From: Podarcis melisellensis
Lineage: Eukaryota
Length of the DNA: 64,000 nucleotides
Assembly (NCBI GenBank): GCA_964234715.1
Contig: OZ174276.1
Reading direction: 5' to 3' (one strand)
Part shown: piece after piece, positions 27,621 through 63,170 of the stretch
How positions within the stretch are numbered: position 1 is the first letter of the stretch
How the letters are laid out: the number at the start of each line of letters is the position of its first letter
Notes under the pieces: generated by a model
Databases searched by the model: none
What the model saw: the letters and a program-made list of their open reading frames with translations, nothing else
What the model was told of the DNA's origin: nothing
Program-made: the position numbers and the translations under genes

Positions 27621-28782
27621 GTGGAATATAGGGCTAAGAGGTGAATAAAATGATGCACCTTGCGGAGAAAGTCACCCGCCCGTTCTCATAGGGTGGAAAC
27701 TAAGGGTCACCTAAGGAAGCTTAATAGTTAAGCTGTGGAGTTTTGTACTGCAAGATGAAACAGTGGGCGGCTTGAAAAGGGTCTTGGACAGGTTCCGCCC
27801 AAGACATTTTGCCGCCTGAGGCAAACCACTAATTGGCGGCCCCCTTCCTCCCCTCCAGGGAAGAAGGAGTGGGTGAAGAGCTACATTAGGAAAGGTGCCG
27901 GCATAAAGATAACAAGGGAGTCTGCTGCCCCTATGGATCTTTCCACCTGAGGCAGTTGCCTCGCCTTGTCTCAGGCATGGGCTGGTCCTGGTTTAGACAA
28001 AATTCATGGAGGGTAAGGCTGCTAGTCACAGTGGTTATTGGAAATTGATAGCCTCTGAATACTAGTTACTGGGAATTACAAAAGGAGGAAATGCTGCTGT
28101 ACTTATGCCCAGCTTCCATCCTGTCCTGGATAAAGGACTAGATGGGCTAACAGGCTAACTGAAAACAAGACTAAAACGAGTCATGACTAAGGTATGAATT
28201 TAGCCCTTTTTTCCTCCAGGAACAGGGCCACCTGATAAACAAGCATCTAGTTGTATGTTTGTTGAGAATAGGTAGCTATATGTCTTAAATGCAAAGAGAA
28301 AGCAGCTGTAAATAGTAGGCAGAAGTAGTGATCAAGTTTTGTGAAGGGTCTACTGGGCCTATTGACTGATACACACTATAAAATTCTGCAAGTACCTCAA
28401 ATATACGATCTGTATTGTAAAACAGGGATGGGTAGCCTGTTCCAACGGCCAATAGGGGCAGTGATTTACAAGGGGCAGGTAAAAGAAAAGAGGTAACGTT
28501 CCAAATATACTTAGGGACACCTGGAGAAAATGGCAAGTGTAAAATATAGGACTGAAAGTTTTAATCAGATTTAAGTAATAGCCCTCCTGATCCTATGCAT
28601 GTTTACTCTGAAATAAGTCCCATTGAAAGTAAAACTTGCAGTGGCTTTCCAAATTTTTTCCACTGAGCTCCCTATGAGTAAGAATGAATACTGTACTTAT
28701 TCTTAAGTACGTTAAATATGTATACTACTATAATCAGCTAACTTTACATAAGATCAGGAAACTTGCAAAACTTCTTACACGT

Positions 28783-29114
28783 AAAGGTGGAGGTACCCCT
28801 GCCCGTACGGGCCAGTCGTGTCCGACTCGGGTTGTGTGCTCATCTCGCTTAAGAGGCCGGGAGCCAGCGCTGTATGAAGACACTTTCGGGTCATGTGGCC
28901 AGCGTGACAAAGCTGCTTCTGGTGAGCCAGCGCAGCGCACAGAAATGCCGTTACCTTCCCGCTATAAAGCGGTACCTATTTATCTACTTGCACTTGGGGG
29001 TGCTTTCGAACTGCTAAGTGGGCAGGAGCTGGGACCGAACGACGGGAGCTCACCCCACCGCGGGGATTCGAACCGCCGACCATGCGACCATACCCACAGC
29101 GCCACCTGCGTCCC
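28783..29114 (-). mobile_element. Sauria SINE
   Basis: Reverse complement starts GGGACGCAGGTGGCGCTGTGG, B box GGTTCGAATCC, Bov-B-like tail ending ACCTTT; TSD TCTTACA(C/T)GT. Confidence 0.9.
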
Positions 29115-55900: not shown

Positions 55901-58900
55901 TCTCTACCACAACAAAACACAAATATTTGATGAGCATAGTGTTCATCCAGATACATAACAGAACATTTAGTCTATTCTCACCTTAACAAACATGACCACA
56001 CATTTGCCAAGAATTTTGTTCACGGGGACTTTGTTGTAATAATCACTTTTAAATACTTCTTTCTCCAAAAACTTTCGGGTTGCAAGATGGAATGTTTCAT
56101 TTGGTCGGTAAAACCAGCAGCCGTACAACCATTTTTCTCCTAAAAACAAGAAAGTTTTGTGATACAAAACAACTATAACAAGTTATAAACTGATCCGCGG
56201 ATCTTCTGTGGCGATAAAATGGCTGAGATAGTGCTAGTTTGTGTCTGAATCTTTGTTCAGGGAAAGTGCATTTTAAAGTCTAGACCTGCAAAACTGTGGG
56301 ACAGTTTCTCTTTGCATATTGTGATTGCACAAATCAAAGACAGACCGTAACCCTCAATTTTTTGAAAACTGAAGTTCACAAAATAAGACATTTGAGAAAG
56401 GATGACATGCTGGTTGTCATTTGTGCTGCACAGAACAGAATGGTGGCTGTACCACCAGTTAACATGGCAATCACAACAGCAGTGCTGTGGGGGGAGAGAA
56501 ACATGACTCTTTGTTCTTAGTGAGAGGTGTCGCACTATGCTTGGGGTACAGATGTGGCCTTGAGGCATATGGGCATAGCATGGCTCTGCGCTTGTAGCTC
56601 AGCCACAATCACCACCTGTGTTCTTCCCTCAGGTTTCCACTAGTTGTCCTGGGGGCAAAGCTAATCAGAATGAAGCAGAACTGTCTCCTCTCAGATCCAC
56701 TCGTACTGCTGCATCAGGCAGGAGGAAAAACTCAGGGAAATGGACCTGCTCCTACAAGTTTTACTCTTACCTGTGTCAGCTGACGACACGTGACTTGTGT
56801 TATTGGCTACAGTGCCCCACAAAATGAATTGTTAGGGATCACCCTACAATCAGCCAGTGCTGTCCTGCATTGAATTATTTCAATAATCTATCAGTTTGTT
56901 AGGGAAATCTCATGGTAGTGGTTCTATTGCCACTTAATGAAATATGTATTGTGTTTACAGGAGCAGGTATCTGGATATAAGACAGGGCATAGGACAGCTG
57001 CAACCACCAGCATTAAGAAGACAGTCTTTCTTACCAGCCGAATCCTCCCACAGTCGTTCAATGCAGACTATGTGAGGTTGCAAATTGGCTTCTGCGGGTT
57101 CAACATACACATAATCCCCAACGTGATACATGCTGTTCTTAAAGCTGCAATCCTGGCTGTATGTCCTGTGTAAACTAGACAGTCCTGATCCTCCAGAAGA
57201 ATCTTCACTCTTTTCAGCTTCTTATTCAACATAAAAGAAAACAGTGGGAATGACTTACAGTCAGTTTAAAAACACAGGACTGCTCGCCTTGTAACACTTT
57301 ACACACCAAGAATCTTTCCTGTAAAGAGTGACCATTTCCTCTTAGAAAGCATTCCTGGCACCAGCCATATCAAGCAATATCCCCCATCACCATGCAATGC
57401 AAGGGAGAGGCGCTATTCTTGCCACACAAGGAGTAAGACAGATTCTATCCCCCCAAGTTATTATTATTATTTTATTAAATTTGTATACTGTCCTTCATCT
57501 ATAGCTCTCAGGGAAGTTCACAACACAAAAATACAAGATAGAAAACATAACAAAACAAAACAAAAACAAACCAATAAACAACCCTCGCACAATGTATTTA
57601 AAAGGGTAAAGGTAAAGGTAAAGGTACCCCTGCCCGTATGGGCCAGTCTTGACAGACTCTGGGGTTGTGCGCCCATCTCACTCAAGAGGCCAGGGGCCAG
57701 CGCTGTCCGGAGACACTTCCGGGTCACGTGGCCAGCGTGACATCGCTGCTCTGGCGAGCCAGAGCCGCACACAGAAACGCCGTTTACCTTCCCGCTGGTA
57801 AGCGGTCCCTATTTATCTACTTGCACCCGGAGGTGCTTTCGAACTGCTAGGTTGGCAGGCGCTGGGACCAAGCAGCGGGAGCGCACCCCGCCGCAGGGAT
57901 TCGAACCGCCGACCTTTCGATCGGCAAGTCCTAGGCGCTGAGGCTTTAACCCACAGCGCCACCTGCGTCCCATTTAAAAGGGTACTGGATGTTAATTAGC
58001 CAAAGGCCTGGTTAAAGAGGAATGTTTTTGCAAGAAGCACGCCCTGATCACTGAAATGGGCCCCCAAAGAGGGGTGAGGAGGGAAGAATGAGCAGGAAGA
58101 AGGCATTTCAGACTTGGCAGTGTATTCAAAATGGTGTGGCAAGGTGGGAAGGGGGCCTGCGGCCAGTTGTACCATCAGGACTTTGGGCAGACGTCTAGGG
58201 CCCCACATAGCAACACGAGCGTAAGGGTTCCCAAGTGCAGCAGGTCTGGCTTACCACATTTTGAAATGAAGTAATGCATATAATTGTTTAAAAAGCTCCC
58301 AGCTCACATGCATATAGTATCAAGAGTATATAAATTACTAGTGCTTGTGACACTCCCCTATTACAGTGATCACTGTTGCCGGTGATACTAATATAATCAC
58401 TACACTCACAATATATTTACCATGTGCAAGACTTGCAATTTACCAGCTGAGTTGGCAGCTTTGAGCTCTGCTGAACAGTACTTCCCTCATGACTGAATTA
58501 CACGTAGGGGCAAGCACATCTGAATAGTTCAGTGGAGGCGGTGTAGGAAACACACATGTTGACAACCATCTGACCAATTACTTTTCTACATTTGACGGTA
58601 TCTTAGTGGGGAAGATGACCCAGAAGGGTAGATTGTAAATTTGGCATTTTCCTTGTCTTCCATCAGAGTGTGTCAAGGCGAACAAGAGAGCTGAATGACA
58701 CAAATGTACAAATCAGCTCATTTATGAATTCATTTTATACTGCCCATCCTCTCTCAAGCAATGCTGATAATGCTGGAGAAGATTCACCTACGTCTCCTTT
58801 CAGTGAGTATCTGCTAAATGAAGAGTGACAATGTGCAGCCATTTAAATTAAGTACAATTACCTCTCTTCTCTTCTTCTCTTTTGAGTTTGTCTTCTTCCA

Positions 58901-60971
58901 TTTCCTTAGGAAGCTTTTCCTTCTTCTCTTTTTCGACATCGTTATGAAGATGCTTGGTAGTGTAGCTGAGGGCTGGTGACAACAGGATCTCGCCATTCTT
59001 GCAGAGTTCGTCACGGATTTTGATAAAGAACTGTTGAAGTTCCACTGCATCCTCATAAATCTCCGAATCCGTCCTTTAAAGAAAAGAGAAACTGCATGAA
59101 ATGACAACATACACAAGGTAACTGTAGAAGAAGCATGAATGTGTCATGGAAAAAAAAAAAAGAAATTTCATTGTTTGCAACTGATTTCCTCCCCCCCCCC
59201 CCCGACCCTGGTTTGGATGTCATGGAAAAGTGTGATTTAGTAAGCCAGGGTAGAAGTGCAGAAGGGGAGGAGGGAAAGGCAAGCTGAAAGTGCAGGGGCA
59301 CACGGCTCATTCTCAGGACAATAAACAATGGTTTAATTGGCTAGAGATTGTGACAATTCCACTGGGCCAAAGTCTTGCTATATCACAGGCGCAGGCAAAC
59401 TCGGCCCTCCAGATGTTTTGGGACTACAACTCCCATCATCCCTAGCTAACAGGACAAGTGGTCAGGGATGATGGGAGTCCCAAAACATCTGGAGGGCCAA
59501 AACATCTGGAGGGCCGAGTTTGCCTATGCCTAGTATATCATCTCAAAATCTGCAGTTCTCATATCATGCAGTAGTATAAGTTGCTTTTTTACATTTCTCT
59601 AAAACTTGTAGTACTATTTAGTGTATATATATGTTAGATAATCATCTGGCTTTTAGCTAACTAAAACATACTTGCATATTGCAAAATCAATGAAGGTACC
59701 TTTCTGAAGAATTACCTTTCTGAGACATTAAAGGTACTAAACATTAAAGGTAACAAGCAAAAGCTATTTATGAGGCTGTTAATGGAAAGTGATTTCATGC
59801 CTCTGGAATAGGAGTCCAATCCCGCACTAGTAACTTACAGACTCTTGTATTAGTATCACTGGCAACAGTGATCACTTTAATAGGGGTGTGTCACAAGCAC
59901 TAGTAATAATAAAAAAAATTGTCCAGTAGCACCTTAGAGACCAACTAAGTTTGTTCTGGTATAAGCTTTCGTGTGCATGCACACTTCTCAGTTGGTCTCT
60001 AAGGTGCTACTGGACAATTTTTTATTTTTATCGCAACTATGTCAGACCAGCACGGCTACCTACCTGAATCAAGCACTAGTAACTTAAGTTACTAGAGAGG
60101 TTGATAAAGGTAAAGTTTTACTCACCGGTTCATTCTCCTTGCCCGCTCCAGCACTTCAAACATCTGCTCTTGGAACAAATCCAATCTCCGGTAGCGGTTA
60201 TTTTCCACATTCTTTCGTATGATATCAAAAGTCAGGGGTGGCTTGTTTGGGAAATTAGGATCAACACCAGGAATTTCAGCTAAGGAGTCACTGTAGCACC
60301 TGCCTTCATCATCCTGATGACTCATTACAGAGACAAAAAGGTTATGTATAAGTTCCTGGATCAGGAGTGTTACATTTGGGACATGAGAATCTTCATCTCC
60401 TTCTATGTCTCTTCTAGTTTCTAGCAAAACTTTGTGCAGCACCAAAGCATCTTTGTAAATCAAGGATTCTGGCTCATTATAAGTGCAGGCATTATTGAAC
60501 ATCATTACAAAATCTTCAACCATGGCATCAATGTCCTGATACTTGTTGGCCATCATGTGACTTCTGATCTTCTCCATATCAACCGGCTTTTTAATTGTCA
60601 GGTAGTAGTCAGGAAGCTCCGATCGAGATGGAAGTCGCAGGAAAATGGCACTAAGCCTTCTCCCTCGCTTATCTGTATAGTTCTTCACCGCTTCGTATAC
60701 TTCATTAAGTTTCTGTTGCATTGGAGTCATATATTTTGATTTTTTAGGGGAGATGCCAGTCTTTCTACCTAGAGGAACAAAATTTAAAGCTAGACAAAAA
60801 AAAGCCAACATTCTTGTGGCTTCAGTTACTCAAATACTAATCTGGGTATATCATGTAACATTAGACACATGCAATTTGATGTCTTTCACATCATAGCTCC
60901 TTCCCAAGACTTTTGTGCTTTTTATTTTCTCTCGTAACAATATGAAAACATCAGAATTTCTCTGTCTGCAC

Positions 60972-61002
<31 letters not shown>

Positions 61003-63170
61003 TCACACACCATGGAAAAGGAAGTGTTTTGCAGAAGGAATCTGGAGGGCAACAGTGGACTCGAAGCATCTGGAGAGTCATGTGAAATAAGGCTAGGCTA
61101 CAGGTCCTCTCTACAGGGACGCGGGTGGCGCTGTGAGTAAAACCTCAGTGCCTAGGACTTGCCGATCGTATGGTCGGCGGTTCGAATCCCCGCGGCGGTC
61201 CGAGCGCCTGCCAACCTAGCAGTTCGAAAGCACTCTTAAATGCAAGTAGATAAATAGGGACCGCTTTATAGCGGGAAGGTAAACGGCGTTTCCGTGTGCT
61301 GCGCTGGTGTTGGCTTGCCAGCTGCAGCTTCGTCACGCTGGCCACGTGACCCGGAAGTGTCTTCGGACGGCGCCGGCTCACGGCCTCTAGAGCGAGATGA
61401 GCGCGCAACACTAGAGTCGGACATGACTGGCCCATACCGGCAGGGGGTACCTTTACCTTTTACAGGTCCTCCCAAGCAGAACCTAACATATTCATATTGC
61501 TTATGTCAAAATCAAAAGGCACACTCTCAAAGCTTTGTTGGAACAGGGCTTTAACGAAGAGAATTGTGTGTGTACCGGGAGATTCCTTATAATAACTTTA
61601 CACAGAGCACTACACAGAAAAGAATGCCGAAGCCTCTTTTCCTCGCTGCCCCATAGATACACTGGAAACCCTGGATCATGGCCAGTGACTGCTAGTCCCA
61701 GCACAAAAAACTTTTCTGCATATAAAACATTCTTCATTTATTTAAAGTAGTTTTCAAATCCCAGAATAAACATCTTGCACAGCAAAACCATTTCAGTTTT
61801 TAGCAAAACAGCCCCAGAAGCTAACAGGGCTACCAATTGCAAGAGGTTACGGTAATAATGGTTTACAGGACATGAGCAGTGTTCAAAACTCCCATTGTTT
61901 TAGGTGCATTTTGTGACAGGGAATTTCATTAGCGCAAGCAGTTTCTGAGCTCTGGGCGCATGTACTGCCCTTAAGATTTCAGATTAAGACTGCAGAGTGG
62001 AAGGAAAGGAGGACCTTTTTCTGTCTCCCCACTTCCAGCTACTCTCTGAAGACTAGAGAAGAGACTCTCTTAAGAATATTAGGGGTGGGCAAGGGAAGAA
62101 TATGTGAAAAATGAACATAATATTTAAGCTGCAGTTCATTCATTTTCAGCTTTGCGTTCTTGTTATTAAAAAAGCGTGTGTAGACATTCCGTTTTTGCAC
62201 CCATAACCTAGGTTTAAGGTACCATTCAGCTCCTAGCGTTCATATCTCAGTTTCAAACACTGTATATGTGCTGGTCTTAGATGCTTCTATACTTCTTACT
62301 ATTCTTACAACCCATAGTCAACAATACATAGTAAGCCAAGCATTCTCGGTTCTTTTTTCTTTGATATACTGTACAGTTTGTCTTTTAAAACAAAGCAGCA
62401 CAAAAAATCTGCAAAAAATAACCCCACCGACCATATGATCTCCAGCAGTGGAGTAATAAAGCATAATGATTTGGGCCTTGCACTGTGCAAAAATACAAAA
62501 TGAAAACCTTCCTGCACAAAATCAGTGCTACTCTAGAGGAAATGGTAAGGGCCATTGCTCTATTACTAGTTCTGTGTTGTTGTTTTTAGAAAACAACATG
62601 ATATTTCTGCAGCAACTTTTGATGAAGATCACAAAGTACTTTACATCTATTAATATCACATGGCTCAGTAGCAATCTAGAAACTGGGGAGAAAAAGAAGA
62701 ACGATATGTTGCAAGAGGCATATGTGGGAAATATATAACTTCTCATGCTGTTCCCCAAATCTAACAACATTTCAGCTTTTACTGTTTCTCATGTTACAAA
62801 AGCTTAGAACAGTGCTTTAACACTTCTACCCTATTCAGGGTCAGACTGTCTCTTTCTTGGCATAAATGCTCTGACACAGTTCAGTTTAGGACACCTTTGC
62901 TCAGGACTCAATTATATTTTAAAATCTAATAAATATTTTGTCAAATTCAGTCTGTATTTCAGAAGCAGATGAAATGTTGCAAACTACTCAGCTTAATAAG
63001 ACTGCAATCTGTTAACATTTTATATTTCATTTATCAGGCTTGGGAATTTACAACAGTTCCTTACTTAATTTCAATTTAGGGGAAGCAACCTCATCATCTT
63101 CAAGCAGAGGTCCCAGCTCTTTCCTCTTTTCTTTAAGAATCTTCTCCAAGATATGAGCATCATTGTAAAC
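37752..63170 (-). CDS. PBRM1: Polybromo-1 (BAF180), last 16 coding exons; 5' part lies beyond the right edge
   Basis: 16 GT-AG exons join in frame (3243 nt, 1080 aa plus stop): BD4 end, BD5, BD6, BAH1, BAH2, HMG box, C-terminus RQAYNIENV*. Confidence 0.98.
38180..38394. mobile_element. Tc1/mariner (Tigger/pogo-like) MITE
   Basis: TA|CAGTGGACCCTC ... GAGGGTCCACTG|TA terminal inverted repeats with TA target duplication. Confidence 0.85.
39166..39382 (-). CDS. PBRM1: PBRM1 exon O (MGILGPPGQQ...KTQRLLHSEAYLKYIEGL...HTLS)
   Basis: ttccag| ... |gtaagt, 217 nt. Confidence 0.96.
40158..40225 (-). CDS. PBRM1: PBRM1 exon N (GVIGQSVSSMVGAPSAGSPFGQQ)
   Basis: atacag| ... |gtaagt, 68 nt. Confidence 0.92.
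42010..42156 (-). CDS. PBRM1: PBRM1 exon M (GMLGGYPPGLPTLQG...PGIPPP), symmetric phase-1 cassette
   Basis: ttcaag| ... |gtaaga, 147 nt. Confidence 0.94.
46099..46263 (-). CDS. PBRM1: PBRM1 exon L (ERAAKVAEQQ...QLTPVA), symmetric phase-1 cassette
   Basis: ttgcag| ... |gtaaaa, 165 nt. Confidence 0.94.
49790..49965 (-). mobile_element. CR1 LINE 3'-end fragment
   Basis: gaatcatagaattggaagggccc...catctagt...cagcctctgcttaaatacctcc is the reverse-strand CR1 3' terminus. Confidence 0.75.
50107..50284 (+). mobile_element. hAT-like MITE
   Basis: Near-match 8-bp TSD CTTTAGAT / CCTTAGAT; gggacccactagtgggtc subterminal palindrome; second copy at 31054. Confidence 0.65.
50385..50697. mobile_element. hAT-Charlie-like MITE
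   Basis: TIRs CAGTGGTTCTCAAACT / AGTTTGGGAACCCCTG; TSD decayed. Confidence 0.7.
50844..51045 (-). CDS. PBRM1: PBRM1 exon K, HMG box (STPKSAKG...KINMSGYILFSSEMR...KKAEYE)
   Basis: ccatag| ... |gtaaat, 202 nt. Confidence 0.96.
51183..51426. mobile_element. Tc1/mariner (Tigger-like) MITE; truncated relative at about 53648-53790
   Basis: TA|CAGTCATACCTTGGTTT ... AAACCAAGGTATGACTG|TA. Confidence 0.88.
51979..52189 (-). CDS. PBRM1: PBRM1 exon J (KPIIPQKEPSP...MPYTPPQ)
   Basis: tcttag| ... |gtaacg, 211 nt. Confidence 0.96.
53143..53326 (-). CDS. PBRM1: PBRM1 exon I (GKCAVLSFKDF...DEIYYFR)
   Basis: tttcag| ... |gtacga, 184 nt. Confidence 0.96.
54317..54474 (-). CDS. PBRM1: PBRM1 exon H (IEKMWVRDGAAYFFGP...PMTCIL)
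   Basis: tttcag| ... |gtaacc, 158 nt. Confidence 0.96.
54644..54789 (-). CDS. PBRM1: PBRM1 exon G (DKEDVPVEM...RPRVGR), start of BAH2
   Basis: ttacag| ... |gtaacc, 146 nt. Confidence 0.96.
55285..55551 (-). CDS. PBRM1: PBRM1 exon F (EYFKLCPENF...HALSLEK)
   Basis: gactag| ... |gtatgc, 267 nt. Confidence 0.96.
55982..56139 (-). CDS. PBRM1: PBRM1 exon E (GEKWLYGCWFYRP...VVMFVK)
   Basis: ttttag| ... |gtgaga, 158 nt. Confidence 0.96.
57035..57220 (-). CDS. PBRM1: PBRM1 exon D (EAEKSEDSSG...ERLWEDSA), start of BAH1
   Basis: aataag| ... |gtaaga, 186 nt. Confidence 0.95.
57609..57971 (-). mobile_element. Full-length Sauria SINE inserted into an older L2-like tail
   Basis: tRNA-derived head, (ACCTTT)n tail, 13-bp TSD ATTTAAAAGGGTA (57596-57608 / 57972-57984). 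Confidence 0.92.
58862..59073 (-). CDS. PBRM1: PBRM1 exon C (TDSEIYEDAVELQQFF...KREEEKR)
   Basis: ttaaag| ... |gtaatt, 212 nt. Confidence 0.96.
59386..59532. mobile_element. Palindromic hAT MITE with an internal 17-bp tandem duplication
   Basis: AGGCAAACTCGGCCCTCCAGATGTTTTGG inverted ends; TSD CTATATCA / GTATATCA; CCAAAACATCTGGAGGG twice (59480-59513). Confidence 0.85.
59907..60069. mobile_element. Penelope-like retroelement remnant with inverted termini
   Basis: 34-bp perfect inverted repeat (59913-59946 / 59990-60023); flanking duplication CAAGCACTAGTAA. Confidence 0.7.
60126..60768 (-). CDS. PBRM1: PBRM1 exon B, bromodomain 5 and most of bromodomain 6
   Basis: ctctag| ... |gtgagt, 643 nt; track ORF 60122-60811. 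Confidence 0.98.
61116..61460 (+). mobile_element. Full-length Sauria SINE
   Basis: GGGACGCGGGTGGCGCTGTG head, GGTTCGAATCC B box, ACCTTTACCTTT tail; flanking duplication TACAGGTCCTC. Confidence 0.92.
63065..63170 (-). CDS. PBRM1: PBRM1 exon A (VYNDAHILEKILKEKRKELGPLLEDDEVASPKLKL), end of bromodomain 4
   Basis: aatag| ... |gtaagg, 106 nt. Confidence 0.94.

Follow-up and report, generated by a model that had tools for sequence, protein, structure and literature searches.

Inverted Sauria SINEs around the bromodomain 5 and 6 exons of PBRM1: a candidate site of by-product circular RNA in an otherwise ordinary locus

In the 64,000-nucleotide stretch of Podarcis melisellensis DNA analysed here (the window), two Sauria SINEs in opposite orientation lie in the introns on either side of two adjacent exons of PBRM1, exons B and C. 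The product observed from these exons in transcriptome assemblies is canonical linear mRNA, and the two SINEs are probably incidental intronic insertions that give rise, at most, to a rare by-product circle. The locus is a candidate site of by-product circRNA and is otherwise ordinary. We infer that any circle formed from exons B and C would be rare and lack a function of its own.

The arrangement may be depicted as follows: By two independent retropositions, each of the introns that flank the constitutive exons B and C would have received one Sauria SINE, the two in opposite orientation. In the pre-mRNA the two copies would pair and form a long, imperfect double-stranded stem, and the stem would bring the donor of exon C near the acceptor of exon B; in primates, inverted Alu pairs promote back-splicing through this geometry. 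Exons B and C would thus be a plausible source of low-level circRNA, a by-product of normal splicing. Convergently arising by-product circRNAs have been associated with flanking introns that contain young, species-specific transposable elements (PMC8516420).

Exons of PBRM1 and the flanking Sauria SINEs

The 3' half of PBRM1 occupies the minus strand of the window; it begins with the end of bromodomain 4, at approximately 63.2 kb, and runs to a stop codon near 37.8 kb. Each of the four exons considered here (A to D, Table 1) has an AG acceptor and a GT donor, and the donor sequences of exons B and C are GTGAGT and GTAATT, respectively. Translation of exon B gave 213 stop-free codons containing two stretches of the Pfam family Bromodomain (E = 9e-29). 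The exon B product matched residues 658-870 of human PBRM1 from end to end in the cryo-EM chain 7y8r_U, a range that takes in 3g0j and related crystal structures of bromodomain 5 and extends over the first 85 residues of 3iu6, a bromodomain 6 structure. The 70 stop-free codons of exon C correspond to human residues 872-941 and to the remainder of 3iu6, residue 871 being the split codon CG/G (the slash marks the exon border). Judged by these matches, exons B and C are the exons of PBRM1 bromodomains 5 and 6.

Table 1. Exons, SINE copies and other repeats at the PBRM1 bromodomain 5/6 locus, in window coordinates.
Feature	Position	Strand	Length	Remarks
PBRM1 exon A	63170-63065	minus	106 nt	End of bromodomain 4; bounds upstream intron
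PBRM1 exon B	60768-60126	minus	643 nt	Phase 1 entry; bromodomain 5 and first two thirds of bromodomain 6
Exon B extension	60769-60789	minus	21 nt	Alternative AG acceptor 60791-60790; used by main X2 contig
PBRM1 exon C	59073-58862	minus	212 nt	Phase 1 exit; bromodomain 6 end and Lys/Glu-rich linker
PBRM1 exon D	57220-57035	minus	186 nt	Phase 1 to phase 1; bounds downstream intron
Sauria SINE copy R	61116-61460	plus	345 nt	Intron A-B; antisense in pre-mRNA; 348 nt upstream of exon B acceptor
Sauria SINE copy L	57609-57971	minus	363 nt	Intron C-D; sense in pre-mRNA; 891 nt downstream of exon C donor
Competing inverted repeat, arm 1	59845-59907	.	63 nt	Intron B-C
Competing inverted repeat, arm 2	58334-58396	.	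63 nt	Intron C-D
Self-complementary hairpin repeat, MITE-like	59380-59538	.		Intron B-C; self-pairing; no partner in other introns
Second self-complementary hairpin repeat, MITE-like	59908-60028	.		Intron B-C; self-pairing

By their B box, their (ACCTTT)n tail and their TA-initial target-site duplications, both repeats flanking exons B and C are assigned to the Sauria SINEs. The window contains the B-box motif GGTTCGAATCC exactly 3 times, with one occurrence in each SINE copy, where 0 were expected. An A-box-like TGGCGCTGTG is located near the 5' end of copies L and R, and a search of the window detected the tail sequence ACCTTTACCTTT solely at the 3' ends of these two copies. Perfect target-site duplications border copy L (13 bp, 57596-57608 and 57972-57984) and copy R (11 bp, 61099-61109 and 61461-61471); read in SINE orientation, both start with TA, the Tn-TA signature. 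Published Sauria SINEs have an (ACCTTT)1-4 tail and target-site duplications beginning with T (PMC13295347).

Copies L and R align over their full length with 81% identity and 8% gaps, one 20-nt indel included. The ratio of observed to expected CpG is 0.83 in copy L and 1.11 in copy R, compared to 0.30 in the window as a whole. The first-pass annotation had described two full-length, CpG-retaining Sauria SINEs that bracket exons B and C in opposite orientation, and this description was confirmed in full. ARAGORN called no tRNA in either of the two SINE heads, as is expected of a degenerate tRNA-derived head; with the promoter boxes present, this blank was set aside as an argument against a tRNA origin. 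In total, three Sauria SINE copies were found in the window. The third (28781-29114, minus strand) lies outside PBRM1 and is 85% identical to copy L.

We noticed that the antisense (ACCTTT)n tail of copy R at 61449-61460 is read as (AAAGGT)n in the pre-mRNA, which resembles 5' splice sites (AG/GTAAAG). No sign of the use of these splice-like motifs was seen in the transcriptome contigs of the relative described below.

Linear transcripts in four transcriptome assemblies

The run search returned twelve runs of one organism, each with 17-19% of the sampled words, which is approximately the exon share of the stretch; none of these was recorded as RNA. Four of the twelve, transcriptome assemblies X1, X2, X3 and X8 originating from three studies, were compared with the window over positions 57141-63140. 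In each of the four runs, a single contig of 2-4 kb covered exons A, B, C and D, and the linear joints were 57220->58862, 59072->60125 and 60765->63062 (the last with an ambiguity in the cut), all with CT..AC ends. Since the contigs join the exons at CT..AC ends, they represent spliced cDNA and confirm every exon boundary.

The sequence of the runs diverged from that of the window by approximately 1% in exons and by approximately 3% in a few low-depth intronic contigs, and the runs therefore stem from a close relative or from a divergent population. Five differences in exon B were common to all four runs and were, by count, at third or synonymous codon positions. The runs also differed in the acceptor chosen for exon B: the main X2 contig joins exon A to 60789, and X1, X3 and X8 use 60768. 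The extension gained by the former choice stays in frame and, in the linker that joins bromodomains 4 and 5, puts eight residues in place of one Ser.

The back-splice 60768->58862 and the A-to-D skip were both absent from the joints listed for the four transcriptome assemblies of the relative, which may lack one or both SINEs and whose assembled contigs drop rare variants and miss rare forms. A self-joint of exon C was likewise absent among the joints listed for the four assemblies. The "go back" records in the contigs were all located at repeat ends and none at splice sites. An earlier proposal held that the SINE pair could give rise to a circPBRM1. The part of it that concerns flanking inverted repeats predicted to form a long duplex stands, as detailed in the next section; as for the circle itself, the splice joints listed were the linear A-B, B-C and C-D joints only.

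Bins within the SINEs were swamped by other copies in these runs, at depths of 10^4 to 10^5, and several signals from the repeats were rejected. A-to-G differences at 57692, 57831 and 57870 were considered as traces of RNA editing, but at a depth of tens of thousands they represent other SINE copies; moreover, editing of a minus-strand pre-mRNA would read as T-to-C on the plus strand. The joints 57971->61115 and 57971->59922 have short sides, are recorded as 'between: not known' and lie off the splice sites, and were dismissed as assembly joins of repeat copies.

One further X8 contig, with a depth of 41.8, reads as far as 60655 in exon B and continues through 16 unmatched letters into the tail of a Sauria SINE (57613). 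At 60647 this contig agrees with the window, unlike the main X8 contig. The joint lies off the splice sites and may reflect a chimeric assembly, template switching or a fragment of exon B beside another SINE copy in the relative.

Predicted pairing in the pre-mRNA and competing repeats

Taken as RNA, the two SINE arms are predicted to form approximately 308 intermolecular base pairs, with a gain of approximately -323 kcal/mol over the arms folded alone. Copies L and R represent the sole strong complementarity between intron A-B and intron C-D, and no partner for either SINE exists in the intron that contains it. No other inverted pair in the 27 kb of PBRM1 covered by the window is as strong. 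With three SINE copies in 64 kb and the strongest inverted pair of PBRM1 formed by two of these, the predicted pairing is therefore real and not a chance match. The block of exons B and C fits the structural precondition of repeat-driven back-splicing better than the rest of PBRM1 in the window.

The arrangement as such is not rare. By a rough estimate, assuming one SINE per approximately 20 kb and introns of 2-3 kb, a gene of 30 exons would contain about one oppositely oriented bracket, and a layout such as the inverted one seen here can be anticipated roughly once in every large gene. In SINE-rich genomes, in-phase exon blocks bracketed by inverted SINEs should be common, as should the stop-free frames that go with them, and a bracket with a stop-free frame is not special unless junction reads accompany it.

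It is quite possible, although we hold it to fall short of likely, that the SINE pair has no bearing on splicing, the insertions being neutral and the stem being unwound or edited such that neither a circle nor a skipped form is made. The linear joints, the only splice joints listed for the contigs of the relative, are in keeping with such inertness, and most exons flanked by inverted repeats yield no abundant circle. ADAR and DHX9 target long, perfect-like double-stranded RNA, and both oppose circle formation. Liang and Wilusz 2014 and Zhang et al. 2014 are said to have found, however, that complementary stretches of 30-40 nt were enough for circularisation in reporters, a length exceeded approximately tenfold by the SINE pair. 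The distances of the SINEs from the splice sites are also below 350 and 900 nt, and the contigs are unable to show the absence of rare forms; these points weigh against inertness.

A second inverted repeat was detected in introns B-C and C-D, with arms that enclose exon C alone (Table 1). Its arms show 94% complementarity, their duplex is predicted at -96.5 kcal/mol, and they are located 772 nt and 466 nt from the splice sites of exon C. The repeat is low-copy: the two arms are its sole copies in the window, and there was no RNA contig depth over the 58341-58540 bin. In the same two reports, alternative pairings reportedly compete, and according to the predicted duplexes this 63-nt pair would compete with the SINE pair and could divert its pairing. 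Were it to dominate, any circle would consist of exon C alone and be 212 nt in length, which we consider unlikely. The near-perfect complementarity of the arms, their nearer position and their lack of other partners in the window speak for such a circle, but the SINE duplex is predicted to be far more stable, no self-joint of exon C is among those listed, and a single-exon circle of 212 nt is short for efficient back-splicing. Its length is not a multiple of three, and stops are present in one of its three frames.

Two further repeats in intron B-C are self-complementary and MITE-like. RNA contig depth over the two was roughly 1,000 to 47,000-fold. They were considered as possible miRNA genes, but all Rfam hits, obtained with a permissive threshold on both strands, were below the gathering scores. 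The hairpins are probably common transposon relics and not miRNA genes.

Reading frame of the putative circle and comparison with known systems

Exons B and C add up to 855 nt (643 + 212), equal to 285 codons; the block is entered and left in phase 1 and lacks an in-frame stop. The junction codons were taken from the single bases at the exon ends, with exons B and C handled individually. In the linear mRNA, the codons split by the introns are A/GT (Ser) between exons A and B, CG/G between B and C, and G/AA (Glu) between C and D. A back-splice would create the codon G/GT (Gly) and the predicted junction peptide EEEKRGRKTGISPK, and a skip from exon A to exon D would create the codon A/AA (Lys) and keep the frame. 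Twelve in-frame ATG codons are present in exons B and C. The putative circle thus has the properties of a rolling-circle ORF, namely a length divisible by three, a frame that is stop-free across the junction codons CGG and GGT, and an in-frame start. The first-pass annotation had counted 855 nt and 285 codons in a stop-free circle with the same phase at both ends and internal ATGs, and had predicted that both bromodomain exons could be skipped in frame; in both cases the arithmetic is correct.

The endless ORF is automatic, because internal coding exons with the same phase at both ends and a summed length that is a multiple of three will always give one, and the junction codon can never be a stop because its first base is G. 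Exon D alone has the same stop-free circular property. A stop-free circular frame is the default outcome of exon phase and length and is not evidence for a coding circle. A rolling-circle ORF in the host frame has been reported for 14% of human circRNAs, finite ORFs outnumbering rolling-circle ORFs by approximately 3.4 to 1 (Fan et al., PMC9242994). The products of a few human circRNAs have been demonstrated with reporters, and rolling-circle products were of low abundance and often rapidly degraded (Fan et al., PMC9242994).

The most far-reaching reading is that a meaningful, lineage-specific circPBRM1 of exons B and C, driven by the SINEs, would be translated from its AUG codons in a rolling manner into bromodomain 5/6 concatemers, while a linear mRNA would lack both bromodomains. 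The stop-free circle with its 12 in-frame AUG codons, the frame-preserving AAA codon of the skip, the strong predicted duplex of the SINE pair, the reporter precedent and a purine-rich hexamer in exon C, AAGAAG, which is an IRES-like element according to Fan et al. (PMC9242994), can all be cited in its favour; yet in-phase coding exons give such a frame by default, rolling-circle products were scarce and short-lived according to the same authors, and neither the back-splice nor the skip is among the joints listed for the four transcriptome assemblies, and we regard this reading as highly improbable. A functional circPBRM1 translated by the rolling-circle route is just as hard to credit, the arithmetic being the part of its model that holds. 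The chances are equally slight for a squamate-specific circPBRM1 at a physiologically relevant level, whether it is rolled into multi-bromodomain concatemers or paired with an in-frame isoform without bromodomains 5 and 6.

Should a circle be shown, the locus would provide a clean non-mammalian case in which a young, lineage-restricted SINE pair gives rise to a circRNA from a chromatin-remodelling gene of deep conservation, and the view of circRNAs as by-products driven by transposable elements would be extended to reptiles. If concatemers or an isoform devoid of bromodomains 5 and 6 were true, a repeat insertion would have made a new chromatin-reader product in one lineage. A literature search for circPBRM1 gave no match, and a search for circRNA studies in lizards returned nothing relevant.

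A circle from the same parent gene is on record in the mouse, where circPbrm1 (mmCircRNA-283) is listed from the cerebellum (supplementary file 13, PMC8516420), so PBRM1 can yield circRNAs in vertebrates. With a span of approximately 5 kb (chr14:31030844-31036059), the mouse circle lies close to the 5' end of its gene. From this position in the gene, it presumably does not comprise the bromodomain 5/6 exons.

In its frame, the putative PBRM1 circle resembles circPSAP, circPFAS and circABHD12 (Fan et al. 2022, PMC9242994), which also combine a length that is a multiple of three with a stop-free host frame and in-frame AUGs. RNA detection, together with junction peptides or reporter products, documents these three circles, whereas the PBRM1 circle described here is putative. 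A further circRNA with a rolling-circle ORF is reportedly circ-EGFR.

In its architecture, the locus is best compared with the inverted Alu pairs (IRAlu) of primates and with the young SINE pairs of rodents and opossum (Gruhl et al. 2021, PMC8516420). It differs from IRAlu-type pairs in that the Sauria SINE is tRNA-derived and Bov-B-mobilised, in that the host is a squamate, and in that the PBRM1 case is known here from predicted pairing. The likeness lies in the layout itself: young, presumably lineage-restricted SINEs in opposite orientation flank internal constitutive exons, and as in IRAlu-type pairs the complementarity is long and imperfect and the copies are less than 1 kb from the splice sites.
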